From Perna viridis (taxonomy: Eukaryota): a stretch of 64,000 bases of DNA. Below the pieces are notes generated by a model, which was not told where the DNA came from, made no database searches, and saw only the letters and a list, made by a program, of their open reading frames with translations. A program made the position numbers and the translations under genes. Of the stretch, positions 18,101 through 24,100 are shown in pieces. The stretch spans positions 13,020,001 to 13,084,000 of the forward strand of contig CM074511.1 of assembly GCA_037379345.1 (NCBI GenBank), written 5' to 3'. How positions within the stretch are numbered: the first letter of the stretch is position 1; each line of letters starts with the position of its first letter.

Positions 18101-21100
18101 TAGTTTTTACCTTTCAAGTTGACTGAAATGGAAAACTTAAAAAATAAATTTGCTCTTCCAATTCTATTCTTCTCTAATTGTCAGTAGTTTATTTTCAAGT
18201 AAATGATTGTAAAAAGGTGCAATCATTTTTTAATTACATTACGATATCTATTTTGTAACACTTACTTGCACTGGATTTAGAAGCAGAGGAGTAGGCATGT
18301 TCTGACATTCCTGACATATGATTGGAACTGACAACTTCTACTTCCATCTGTATATCATCTGAGTTCTGTGACAATGATGGAGGTGAGAGAGGCATTGCAA
18401 ATGAACTTTCTGATTCCATACTGAAATGTCCAGAGTCTGAGTTTTTAAATGATGTAACAGAGCTTGATGAACCACCAAAAGCACTTTGTGTAACACTAGC
18501 AAGGTGCCCCTGAAGTTCTGGATTATTTGCTGCTTTTAAAAGTTCAGCATTGATTATTTTTTCAGTCTTTTCTCTTGCAGCCTGCTCAACTATTTTCTGA
18601 CTGAGTACACTGAGTTTGGCAAGAGCAGAAGCCAGTTCACTTGTTGTCAATGCTTGCCTTGCCCTGTCCTGCCATGCCATTGCCCGTTCTGTCAGACACT
18701 GTAATGCTTCACCTTCAGGTAACCTGACAGGTAGTTTTTGTAATGAAACAAGTAATGATAAAATGGTTTCCAGTCTTGGTCTTCTAGAACGTAGACACAA
18801 GGGACAGAGGAATTTAAGATCTTTAGCTGCCTGTACAGCTGCAGCTTGTGCAGTTTTGTTCTTGATATTTGCGGATTTTGGTAATGGTACACAAGTTCCT
18901 GAAAAAGGAAGAAGTATATACAAATGTATGGTACTATAAGTTTGTGGTAAATGAAATCATTTTACTTTATTCTGAATTTAGGTGGTCATTTTCATAAAAG
19001 TGTTAATGTTGAAAATTGATGGCAAGTTGAATAATGGCTAACAGTATATAACAGTCCTAACTTAAAATTATATTAATTTTGACTGCATAATTCTAAATTT
19101 AATTTAGTGCATATTGTGCATAAAGGAATTATAATGTTATATGTTGTTTAGGAATTAAATAACTCAGAATGTCTATTCATAGAATACATCTAACTAATAA
19201 TTCCTTATTCACACAATGGACTGGTTACCAACAGGACACTTACCATGGAACCAGTCTTTACAAAGTTCACACTGCAACATGAAGCCAGCGGCTGGTTTTC
19301 TACAGATGCAGTACTTGACTTCATACTGAGTTTGGTTTAGCTTACTTAGGTTGATTTGTCGTAACTCTTTCATTGATTCATATTCTTTATACTCTGCTGA
19401 TTTAAATGCTGCAACCTGTGAAATAAATCAATATATGAAGTAAAGCTAGGAACAAATGTGAACACCCACTAAAAGAGAATGTCCAAAAAGTTTGATTATC
19501 TCTATTTTTATTCTACAACTGTAGTTTAAAGTCACACAAATATATGGAATTATAGTGTAGATTAATTTTTGCATTTGAACAAAATTTCTATCAGTATATA
19601 CAGCCTAATCTCTCTTTTCATGTGATTTTTTTTTAAACAAACCAATCACTGTAACTCCTTTGCATGTGTCAAATCATGATAGTGGCACTACCCAGTAAAA
19701 ATGCAACAATCGTATAAAACTTGGTAAAAAACTAAATCAAAGAGGACTAAAATTATTTTAAAGCAAACCTTTGCTCTACTGTGAAGTGGGAGACAAAATA
19801 TGGAAACTTAGTGTTACAATCAGTTTGAACCATGCAGACATATACAATTCTATCATGGCTTGATTATGTTGTACAGGTATCAATATTTGCTATCACATAT
19901 GTGGTTACAGGCAATATTTATGGTAAAATATTAACTGTAAACTAATAGCACTTGGTTTCAAATAATTTGGTTCTCGTACTGTGAAAGTACTACTGTTCAT
20001 GGGGTACTGATTTACTTGGTTTTTCATGGGTAGGCCACACCATGTAATTTGGTTCCAAACAAAAAGGAGATTTCAATTAATATGTATACTGAAAACCTCA
20101 AAACCATGAATTCAAGAATCCATAAACTTTTTGTTTTTCCTTAATCCACAAAAATTGGTATCAATGAATTAAAGTACTTTCACAGTATTTCATTTATCCA
20201 ACGATAGTTTATTGTTTAAAAGAACTCATTTTCATTTTCATACCTTTATTACTAACAAGTAATTAAGTGACAACATCTTTCAAAAATATCTTACAATAGC
20301 AGCTGGATCCCTGTGTTCTTCTGTTTTATAATCTGTATTGTTGTTGGTTTCACTATCTCTTCTGTCTCTGTCTTCTTTCCTTTTCTTTCTATTCTTAGCC
20401 CCACTGTAAACTCCAACATCTGTCCTGGGTGATAACACCTATAAGGTAAAATCATTATCATGTGTAGAAACAATTGTGTAGAAACAATTTTCAAGAGATC
20501 TGACAATTCATATGCATGAAAGTACATTTCAATTACTTAATAGGATTACTGATCTAATTACTCGAACTGAGTGAAAATGAATGTGAAGCACATCATATTA
20601 AAACTGAAATGAGTCAAAAAAGGTACTATTTTCCATCAACTGACAAGGAAATTATCATATGTTGTCTGTCAAAATTTTTACTTTACATTCCTAACGCATG
20701 TACAAATAGACATCTGCAAGGATTTTCAGGCATTTTTTAAGTCAATGAAAATATTGTTTGATTCCTAGAGAATTACTCCTCATGTTCATACCTCTAATAG
20801 GGTATAGGTGGAGTTTTTCTTCAGGAAAGTCCTGGCAGTTCTCTCCCTCCATGATTTAGCAGCAGCTACCTGAGATTCTACCTGTGGTAACTGGTCTAAC
20901 CTGACAGGTATTGGACGACCTTTGTTGACCAGACTTTCTAATACATCAAGATAAGGATAAGACTCTGAGTTCTGTAAATAAAAAAAAGCTTTCTTACATA
21001 TTCAGTTAGAGTGAAGATAAGGTACTTCCATGAATACAAACCACAACCTTTTTATTACTGTAAATTATCAATTTCCCTTAAGAACTTGTCACATCCAGTT

Positions 21101-24100
21101 TGAACCATGCAGATATGAATCACCTGACATGGCTTGATTATGTTGTGTTCATATTAGCTATCATGAAGTTTGACTCAACAAGCATCTATAATCAAATGTT
21201 TGCTGGATATTGATAGCTTTGGGAACTAAATGTACTTTCACTTGTCTTGTTACACAACATTTCAAAGAGTTCCAAAATAACTCTTTTCAAAGTTTTTTTC
21301 ACAATCTTATGAATCCAAAGCAAATTTTTGAACTAATGATGACTTAGATATACTTCTGTTATCTATATTTCAGTAAGATACATTTCTTAGCTTAAAAATA
21401 ATTTCTCAACCCACCTGAACAGCTTCCACTTTAGAAGTCCATTCCTTAGCTTTCCTTAATGCATCCTTCAGTGCTGTGACATTTGGGAGATAGGCATTAA
21501 TTCCTTCAGCCTCCTTGATTATTGCCTCTAATGTAGCCATCACATGGCGTGGTCTATAAATACAAAACAAAAATTACTGCAAATACACCTGTTTTACCAT
21601 AATTGTACACTCAACCAAATGTTAAGAAACTTGATTACAATCATAATTCATCAGACTCAACAAAACTTTGCAAATTCATCTTTATTATTAATAAAAAGAA
21701 TCTCCTGGATACTCCCTTTGTGCTTTAAAATATGACCAGTGTATCCTCCATATCCTTCTTTCTCTATTTTAGTCTGTATAATTACATGTACTGTATTATA
21801 TGTCTCTGTACCTGATTTTTGGTTTTGGAGAAATAAATAACATTTATCAAAATATGTATTATACTGCTCAGACAAAAAAGACACTTCATGGTTTAAAATT
21901 CTTTTAAATTGATTTCTATTTCATTAAGCTTACCTGGCCTGCAGACATATCCTAGCTTTCTCTTCCCACCTCTCACTGATAGTCAGAAGTTCCTGTAACT
22001 CTGCCATAGCTTTCTCAACCGCAGGATGTGGTGCTAGACCTACACCTGAGTCCATCAACTTTCTCATCACGTCCAGTGTAACATTCAATGGATCTTTCAT
22101 GGTCTCTCTCACTTCATCTAACCATCTTGCTTGTTGGAGAACCTAAAATAAAATAAAATTAGCAGTCAAAAACTTTATCAATGTGGAAAACTAGAGCTAT
22201 AACTATATAGAAATTCAAACCAGTCTTGCATGGACTTTAGTTAAAATCAACAATATAGAGGCTTGACTCAATGTTAAAGAATATCACTTTTGAATATTTA
22301 GTTTAATTAAAACAACACTTTTAATGTAGTGATAATGTCTTAATGATGTCTTTTTTGTAAAATGATGTAAAAATTGATTAAAAATTAATCAAATCATGTC
22401 AAATACATTTGCCGATTCTGTCAGGTAGGTATATTCATGGGTATCAAATTTTCACCGATTCAAAAAATGATAACCATTATACAGTTTTAAAAATCAATTT
22501 CGCTTATACTACTTTTCACAGCTTTCTTTCCACCGTGGAAATAGCAAAAATTAGTGTGTTTACAATACTTGCTCTTGAAGATTACACATACCTGCTTAAG
22601 TCTTGGGATCTCGACCAAATCAACATCCATAGTGGCACTAAACTCAATCAGTTGTTCTAGCTTCTCAGAATCAGGAGTTTCAGCATTCAAAGCATCCTGT
22701 GCTTCTTTCTGGAAGTTAATAACCTGATCAAGCAGTTCCTACAAAATATCATTATTTCAGATAATTTTAAAAGAATAGAGTAGAAAGACTTCATCTATCA
22801 TATAAGAATAAAGTTATCTTAAGTTCAAAATCTTAAAAAAAATATACTAAGCTCAACTGGAACCTAAAAAAAAATACATAGAAACAAGCATATAAGATGT
22901 AACTCTAATACTGAATTTCCTGCTTACTAGTTACTAAACCATTCCACAAATCAGTATTTCAGAAGGAGCAATGGAATAGTACTTAAATAAAGAAACAATT
23001 CATACCTTGACAAGTTTAGCTTCTTTGAGTATGCATGGAAGGTTAGCAATTTGTTCATAAAAACAGTTCAATTCTTCTAAGCTAAGCTTGGCAATATACT
23101 TTCCTTCATTAGACTGACGATTCCTGTAACAATTTAAGAAAATTTATATTCTATACAAAACAGTTGTTGTAAATATAAGAAAAACAACTTACACAAAATG
23201 AGCAGTGATCTTTCAATTTTTCCATTACTAACAATCTGTTATAATTAATTTCCTTATTGTCCTTTTAAAAAGAATTTATCAACATAGAAGCTTACAAAAA
23301 CTAAAAACATTTACACAGACATAATTTTACACAGCAAACAAAAAAAGCAGAAATTGACAAATACCAAATAAACATAAGGTAAAAAAAGAAATGAAAAGGT
23401 TAATCTGGATTTGAAAAAGCACAATTCTATTTTTAAAAGAAAGTCAAACATGTAATAGTTTTACATTAGTCAATAACAATACTGACCTGGTTCTGACTTT
23501 CTTGGTCACAAGTTGGTTGGCCACACTGGCACACTTATCAGCTTCACTGACAGCATTGATCAGATTCTGTAATAACTCAGAGTCTGGATATCTCTTCTCA
23601 TCAGCCTCTGTGATCAGTTCCTTTATCTCTGGTAGCTCTGTTGAAGAAAAAAAGAAGAAAATCACAAGAAAACTTACTTTGAGAGAGAATTAAATATGAA
23701 GTGTTTAAACTTTTTATAAAAATGAATTGTTTTTCAATTGTTCTCCCTACCCAATATTTTCCATCTCGGGTTACTTATGTCAGGATATAAGTAAATGTAC
23801 TAAAACATATTGGCAATATGCAATGAAAACATTACGTTGCACTGACAGGGCTGATAACATTAATAATATTTTGAAAGTCTCAGCAGAATATCTCATCTAT
23901 CATCCGAACATGCTCACTGTGTCTTGACTTCAAAAATGTCAAATTAAAAGTAGCTGTATGGATTTGTTTTCCTTCAGTAATTTTTTCTTTTATTGATTAA
24001 ACTGTGTAATATATTTCTAACCTTCTTGAGCTTTACCATTCTTTTACAATATAGCAAGATCTTGAAAGCAGTTTGATCATTGTATTAGTAATTATCACTT

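Follow-up and report, generated by a model that had tools for sequence, protein, structure and literature searches.

Two introns of the KDM5 gene of the mussel Perna viridis each carry, on the sense strand of the gene, a unit of 135 to 142 nt with the outline of a box H/ACA small nucleolar RNA (snoRNA). The locus raises the question whether these units are working guide RNA genes and, if they are, which uridine they direct to modification. Both lie in a stretch of 64,000 nt (assembly GCA_037379345.1, contig CM074511.1, positions 13,020,001–13,084,000 of the forward strand), named here the window, to which all plain coordinates refer. A preliminary description of this stretch had proposed two paralogous guides of a possibly orphan family with no assigned target. 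On the evidence given below, the two copies are very probably genuine H/ACA snoRNA genes, of which at least copy 2 is functional. With moderate confidence, we favour the fuller reading of two paralogous intronic H/ACA snoRNA genes sense to KDM5, the 3′ pocket of which would guide modification of U3012 in the large-subunit (LSU) rRNA.

Two hairpin-hinge-hairpin-ACA units in KDM5 introns

Copy 1 (19809–19950, minus strand, 142 nt) and copy 2 (21084–21218, minus strand, 135 nt) can be aligned end to end over their full length, and both were found where the preliminary description had located them. In minimum-energy as well as centroid predictions, each folds into two hairpins separated by a hinge and followed by a short tail with an ACA, and the same fold is predicted for the copies of a related species, L019, described below. 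The folding-energy z-scores are modest for the two window copies (−1.7 and −2.1) and amount to −2.8 to −3.0 for the L019 copies. Copy 2 is the canonical member of the pair, with a score of 87.6 bits under R1, a covariance model of the 3′ hairpin; copy 1, which has a non-canonical H region, scores 83.5 bits.

The 3′ hairpins (19815–19872 in copy 1 and 21090–21147 in copy 2, both on the minus strand) are composed of different lower stems, UACAA/UUGUA and CACA/UGUG, respectively, and of the same pocket and upper stem AGCCAUG/CAUGGUU. Indeed, a 19-nt stretch, ACAACAUAAUCAAGCCAUG, and a 23-nt stretch, UCUGCAUGGUUCAAACUG, which together span both pocket strands and the upper stem, are identical in the two copies, in agreement with the match between pocket strands reported previously. 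The ACA box (19812–19814 in copy 1, 21087–21089 in copy 2; minus strand) directly follows the 3′ basal stem and keeps this position in all six copies now known from three species. It lies 13 nt from the upper stem if the latter is counted as 7 bp, or 14 nt in a 6-bp register with the closing A-U pair open, close to the 14 nt estimated before; in the 6-bp register, the pocket has the distance to the box (14–16 nt) that characterizes the H/ACA class.

The 5′ hairpins are less alike. They occupy 19888–19950 in copy 1, with the basal stem UGCUAUUA/UGAUAGCA and a 5′ pocket strand of only 2 nt, and 21156–21218 in copy 2, with the basal stem AGCUAUCA/UGAUAGCU and no conserved guide pocket (minus strand in both cases). 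Between the two copies, one basal pair is changed on both sides (U-A versus A-U) and another on a single side, so that the basal stems of the 5′ as well as the 3′ hairpins do differ and still pair, as had been claimed. Likeness falls to only about 55% in the 5′ hairpins and in the apical loops of the 3′ hairpins. The internal loop of the copy-2 5′ hairpin is 21 nt from the H box, outside the pocket distance of 14–16 nt, and a search of rRNA and small nuclear RNA (snRNA) for a target of a 5′-hairpin guide gave no match beyond 9 pairs, G-U included, and an unsuitable geometry. Since it has no conserved pocket and a loop too far from the H box, the 5′ hairpin is most likely a structural or assembly module devoid of a conserved guide. 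None of the apical loops contains a Cajal-body (CAB) box, UGAG or AGAG; the single UGAG of copy 2 is situated in the 3′ pocket region of the 5′ hairpin and not in a terminal loop.

The hinge of copy 2 carries the H box AUAUGA (21149–21154, minus strand), which fits the consensus ANANNA, as do the hinges of the three L019 copies, a, b, and c (AUAUCA; AAAUAA/AUAAAA). The hinge of copy 1, AAUAUUGAUACC (19876–19887, minus strand), reads AUAUUG at the position where AUAUGA or AUAUCA stands elsewhere, and it contains no ANANNA; the H box of this copy is thus non-canonical, as first described. Fold, the boxes of copy 2, pocket geometry, and the rRNA pairing and compensatory changes presented below all agree with the assignment of the units to the H/ACA guide class.

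A DNA search with copy 2 as the query found two sites only in the 723-Mb assembly, and model R1 recovered the same two copies genome-wide at 84–88 bits, with the next matches at 36 and 31 bits. A transposable element, including a miniature inverted-repeat one, is thereby ruled out: instead of the hundreds of dispersed copies in either orientation that would mark one, there are two strong copies in 723 Mb, both sense to KDM5 and none dispersed. Rfam gave nothing at the gathering threshold over the whole window, and the units had no match even at E up to 10 (region 19700–21300). The low-score Rfam matches (mir-8196, MicC, snoR116, mir-999, SCARNA7, and others) fall outside the units or on the opposite strand, with E of 1 or more, and were rejected.

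A lone element resembling the 3′ hairpin was detected elsewhere in the genome (G000:C6:43023354–43023421 (−), equal to L037:1501–1568 (−)), with an R1 score of 35.9 bits and a genome-wide E of 0.15. Its lower stem is UAUAA/UUGUA, and its upper stem, GUCAUG/CAUGAC, differs from the GCCAUG/CAUGGU of the units yet is paired. The 3′ strand reads UCAAACUGA followed by ACA, and the 5′ strand has AAACAA instead of AAUCAA. A convincing 5′ hairpin is lacking, and neither rRNA nor snRNA offers a target of at least 8 pairs; the element may be a decayed third copy. In addition, a pattern scan of metagenomes with the hairpin core hit five sites, each of which scores low under the model. L043 and L047, the two inspected, have no ACA, and all five were taken as chance.

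The predicted LSU target and its human counterpart

We scanned every U of the small-subunit (SSU) rRNA, the internal transcribed spacers (ITS) with 5.8S, and the LSU rRNA, all from the species' own rDNA, as well as of U1, U2, U4, U5, and U6 snRNA from its own genes, for bipartite pairing with the 3′ pocket in three registers, at a threshold of 10 contiguous pairs, each side contributing at least 3. Two sites reach this threshold: LSU U3012 (UUGA-UU-UUGAUU), paired by Watson-Crick pairs throughout, and SSU U1318 (UUUG-UC-UGGUUA), with one G-U pair. U3012 is the sole all-Watson-Crick site of at least 10 pairs in SSU, 5.8S/ITS, and LSU. Such a site is found by 18 of 1000 shuffled guides (1.8%), compared with 237 of 1000 for a site of at least 10 pairs with G-U allowed; of the two sites, only that in the LSU therefore stands out.

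At U3012, the hexamer AAUCAA of the 5′ pocket strand, adjoining the upper stem (19860–19865 in copy 1, 21134–21139 in copy 2; minus strand), is complementary to LSU 3014–3019 (UUGAUU), and the UCAA of the 3′ pocket strand (19825–19828 and 21100–21103, respectively; minus strand) to LSU 3008–3011 (UUGA). The guide letters that pair with the LSU, six of the 5′ strand and four of the 3′ strand, are the letters invariant in all six copies, and the unpaired outer letters vary. The pairing, of 4–5 + 6 Watson-Crick pairs at 14 nt from the ACA, holds with the guides of all three species when they are matched to the rRNA of this genome, and the L019 guide adds an eleventh pair, G with C3007. The units had been considered possible orphans, with no clean match to rRNA; the conserved core AAUCAA + UCAA fits U3012 with 10–11 Watson-Crick pairs instead, and, provided that the units are genuine H/ACA genes, this putative family probably guides the pseudouridylation of LSU U3012.

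The mussel LSU segment CUUGAUUUUGAUUUUCAGUACGAAUAC, aligned to the human 28S stretch, puts U3012 at what would be position 4263 and U3031 at 4282; the five modified positions of the human stretch presumably all fall on U. The spacing between U3012 and U3031 is 19 nt, equal to that between 4263 and 4282. Human 28S rRNA carries Ψ4263, Ψ4266, Ψ4269, Um4276, and Ψ4282 (PMC6182160), and SNORA2 (ACA2) is the guide for 28S-4263 and 28S-4282 (PMC6466398). The Rfam consensus of SNORA2 contains GAAUcAAG adjoining the upper stem of the 5′ hairpin and UGGUCUGU in the 3′ hairpin, and these elements are complementary to the LSU of this genome just after U3012 and just after U3031. The candidate target U3012 would thus be the equivalent of human 28S Ψ4263.

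SNORA2 (RF00410, SNORA2/SNORA34 family) shares several traits with the KDM5 units. It is a box H/ACA guide with one pocket for 28S Ψ4263, its hexamer AAUCAA abuts an upper stem that starts with G, a position in which the KDM5 copies have the same hexamer, and it has several paralogues in the introns of one host gene. Nevertheless, there is no detectable homology in sequence or structure: RF00410 gives no match on the units at E up to 10, and its gathering threshold of 70 bits is not reached. The 4263-type guide resides in the 5′ hairpin of SNORA2 and in the 3′ hairpin of the KDM5 RNA; the KDM5 RNA has nothing that corresponds to the second SNORA2 guide, for Ψ4282, and its 5′ hairpins do not match the U3031 region; and the host gene is KANSL2 in one case and KDM5 in the other. 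We therefore read the KDM5-intron RNA as a putative functional analogue of the 5′ hairpin of vertebrate SNORA2, and not as a recognizable homologue. The search with RF00410 revealed no credible SNORA2 orthologue in this genome. Its sole SNORA2-like match (G000:C11:7926244–7926366 (−), equal to L026:1501–1623 (−)) scores 39 bits against the threshold of 70, ends in AUA and not ACA, folds worse than its shuffles (z-score +1.0), and is probably false.

The units also resemble intron-encoded H/ACA snoRNAs of metazoans in general, with their length of 135–142 nt, the hairpin-H-hairpin-ACA order, a pocket 14 nt from the box, a bipartite antisense of 10–11 bp, and a sense position in an intron of a broadly expressed gene. 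They differ from these in that only one of the two hairpins has a conserved guide, that one paralogue is without a canonical H box, and that the copies are found in different introns of their host from one close relative to another. Taken with the canonical target of an already known kind, the KDM5 units most likely represent a lineage-specific H/ACA family absent from Rfam, and not an orphan guide.

By analogy with the known pathway, we infer processing, ribonucleoprotein assembly, and U3012 modification to run as follows. The spliced KDM5 intron would be debranched and trimmed back to the snoRNA, and dyskerin/Cbf5, Nop10, Nhp2, and Gar1 would assemble on the H and ACA boxes. AAUCAA and UCAA would then pair with the LSU as above, leaving U3012 and U3013 unpaired at the pocket top, and U3012, 14 nt from the ACA, would be isomerized to pseudouridine. 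In this scheme, only the 3′ hairpin would guide; copy 2, with its good H box, would be the likely working gene, and copy 1, having lost the H consensus, may be weakly functional or decaying.

Copies in related species and their apparent movement between introns

The orthologous regions of relatives were reached by way of a large downstream KDM5 exon open reading frame (ORF; 18234–18923). A first relative (L019/L020, 88% amino acid identity in the neighbouring KDM5 exon) has three copies, all sense to KDM5, and a second one (L029/L030, 83% in the same exon) has at least one, truncated where the contig stops and likewise sense to KDM5. In a blastn comparison with L019, the RNA copies are the only non-exon matches of the KDM5 3′ region of the window, forming islands in otherwise unalignable introns. 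The preliminary description had proposed an alignment of orthologous introns as a check; conservation is seen in these two relatives and not in more distant ones, at 60–76% amino acid identity, for which no copy occurs in the KDM5 parts fetched. Specifically, L021–L025 and L031 have no copy in those parts, and for L027, L028, and L032–L034 the sequence stops short of the relevant introns or its last introns are devoid of a copy. The family seems to be young, unless it has relocated in the distant relatives.

In the six 3′ hairpins from the three species, 96.4% of the pair cells of the alignment are paired, compared with 30–39% when the partners are slid. Compensatory changes, with both partners replaced, affect three pairs of the 3′ hairpin; a basal pair occurs as U-A, C-G, A-U, or G-U depending on the copy. 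A covariation score as high as that observed was reached by none of 500 shuffles. Over six sequences from three species, this covariation backs the predicted 3′-hairpin structure in a supportive, not conclusive, manner.

Variation in the pocket is restricted to the outer letters, where CAU is replaced by CUU and ACUG by GAUG or ACAG between species. ACUG, common to the two window copies, is GAUG in each of the three L019 copies. L019 thus has a variant of these letters to itself, which makes the identity of the pocket within a species look like the outcome of homogenization or recent copying and not of constraint.

The position of the copies within KDM5 differs as well. Copy 2 and L019 copy b are in the same intron, and copy 1, L019 copies a and c, and the L029 copy are in three other introns. 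L019 copies b and c (L019:1451–1591 and L019:5505–5648) are nearly the same in sequence, as are about 20 nt of flank to either side, and sit in different KDM5 introns, which indicates a putative, very recent duplication from intron to intron. Since copies occupy different introns and L019 b and c are nearly identical, the family appears to duplicate and relocate within its host gene.

In two of the relatives without a copy, the exons flanking the copy-2 intron are apparently contiguous (L021:589–850 and L031:2862–3209, compared with window 20788–21571). The blastn matches in L021 abut at 664–666, and a single ORF runs through the junction in L031. The host intron of copy 2 may thus be absent from L021 and L031 through intron loss or gain.

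Competing explanations, expression, and the host gene

Several points weigh against a functional guide for U3012. The LSU register requires the closing A-U of the predicted 7-bp upper stem to be open, the X arm is only 4 bp in this species, and SSU U1318 also provides 4 + 6 pairs (one G-U) with the guides of all three species. The placing of U3012 at human Ψ4263 is in part tentative, and the distribution of the family is limited, as described for the relatives at 60–76% identity. Two standard paired-end RNA-seq runs yielded zero reads on either copy; as standard paired-end libraries normally lose snoRNAs, we regard this as uninformative and not as negative. Logan contigs of low depth (about 4.6–4.8, from two older runs) overlap copy 2 at 21011–21241 and from 21122 on. 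They run past the ends of the unit, and there is nothing on copy 1; the neighbouring introns are empty. These contigs are compatible with a stable copy-2 RNA, the ends of which they do not define.

It is unlikely, though worth weighing first, that the same snoRNA has its real or second target at SSU U1318 (UUUG-U-C-UGGUUA), read with the full 7-bp upper stem. The fit comprises 4 + 6 pairs with the window guide and 4 + 7 with the L029 guide, is kept by the guides of all three species, and leaves the upper stem closed at a canonical distance to the ACA. A Drosophila guide whose name, Psi18S-1389, is found in the literature presumably acts somewhere in the region of U1318. However, the U1318 pairing includes one or two G-U pairs, and 24% of shuffled guides do as well with G-U, so that it is not significant alone. 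The 3′-strand change of L019 weakens this pairing (A-U to G-U) and strengthens that with the LSU. U1318 corresponds to human 18S U1362, and a pseudouridine there would be one not known in humans; the human 18S list has Ψ1347 and Ψ1367 and nothing at 1362 (PMC6182160).

An improbable alternative is that the units do not work as guides, being either snoRNA relics in decay or conserved hairpins of the introns with a role in KDM5 splicing. It would account for a copy 1 without an H box, for the lack of RNA-seq reads on either copy, for a family confined to close relatives whose copies move between introns, and for the relic-like look of the lone diverged 3′-hairpin element. Against it, the compensatory changes and the invariant guide letters in three species indicate selection on an RNA, the H and ACA boxes are retained in five of six copies, and intron placement is not conserved, which argues against a role linked to splice sites.

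The chances are slim, too, for the orphan guide proposed in the preliminary description, in which a long pocket target, CAGUUUGA-U-N-UUGAUUAUG, would lie in an mRNA or another non-rRNA molecule. The two window copies agree over the full length of both pocket strands, and the long target pattern has 18 exact matches in the genome against 5 for a reversed control, three of the 18 having the U and the right spacing. That identity is confined to this genome: the two related species have other outer letters, which leaves the long target without conservation, and the GAUG shared by the L019 copies makes the identity within a species look like homogenization. The genome matches are isolated and scattered, and none of them falls in a known RNA; a canonical rRNA target exists. 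Finally, a Cajal-body RNA (scaRNA) guiding a spliceosomal pseudouridine, e.g., in U2, is very improbable, as it shares the H/ACA architecture and is otherwise supported solely by a partial similarity to U2 noted in the preliminary description, against which stand the missing UGAG/AGAG in the apical loops and the finding that U1, U2, U4, U5, and U6 of this genome offer no site of at least 8 pairs to the guides of any of the three species. The search for pocket targets that the preliminary description had suggested thus points to rRNA, probably at U3012, and not to an snRNA.

If U3012 is indeed guided from KDM5, the units add an unannotated H/ACA family, absent from Rfam, in a clade with almost undescribed snoRNAs and assign a candidate guide to a conserved large-subunit pseudouridine. 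The same antisense hexamer on a scaffold unrelated to SNORA2 and in another host would suggest that guides turn over as modification sites persist, and the differing intron positions in close relatives would provide a small, tractable case of snoRNA gene movement and homogenization. The finding opens no new mechanism. A more elaborate scenario, which we consider doubtful, is that a young guide has become responsible for the Ψ4263-equivalent site in mussels, as a replacement or a backup, that its copies relocate among the introns of one host and are homogenized in each species, and that the same pocket, shifted by one base pair, may also modify SSU U1318; were it true, a single snoRNA lineage would combine de novo recruitment, intron-to-intron mobility, concerted evolution, and dual targeting.

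The host was identified as KDM5 by searching its minus-strand exon ORFs singly, and not as a joined protein, against Pfam; they match JmjN, ARID, PHD, KDM5_C-hel, zf-C5HC2, and PLU-1. In two RNA-seq runs of the same species, analyzed as raw reads, the exons 20293–20436 and 20790–20974 (both minus strand) are spliced together at 20436/20790, loose ends join 20293 to 19413 and reach 21418 on the other side, and the strandedness fits a minus-strand RNA. Copy 1 accordingly lies in an intron of about 879 nt (19414–20292, minus strand), and copy 2 in one of about 443 nt (20975–21417, minus strand), delimited by loose ends and exon edges, with the end of the unit about 110 nt before the 3′ splice site. 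One snoRNA-free intron separates the two host introns, in agreement with their earlier numbering as introns 23 and 25, and both copies are sense to KDM5. KDM5 had been said not to be known as a snoRNA host, and we likewise found no paper linking it to snoRNA hosting; as a host, it looks new but unremarkable.

Within the copy-1 intron, the segment 19958–20217 belongs to a multi-copy repeat. RNA-seq reads on this segment are partial and come in both orientations, about 86% of them run on into unlike sequence, and they show consistent base differences; they probably originate from other copies of the repeat elsewhere. Further along the window, at 24628–24987, a segment of 40–80 nt from the KDM5 gene of a relative (L031:32–113) matches five successive places, which indicates a tandemly repeated exon-edge segment.

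Two complete rDNA units lie in the genome, inverted and about 17 kb apart (G000:C11:5368934–5401503), with partial LSU fragments between them (5381800–5384360). This inverted pair may reflect an assembly collapse of the rDNA array. The spliceosomal snRNA genes form long tandem arrays with periods of about 1.73 kb for U2, 1.45 kb for U5, 0.69 kb for U6, 0.74 kb for U4, and about 1.7 and 1.07 kb for U1, and the array loci are G000:C12:15169066–15266582, C12:3605546–3677953, C2:52195776–52240417, C5:23808233–23844182, C2:48830085–48889281, and C9:30014099–30035593.

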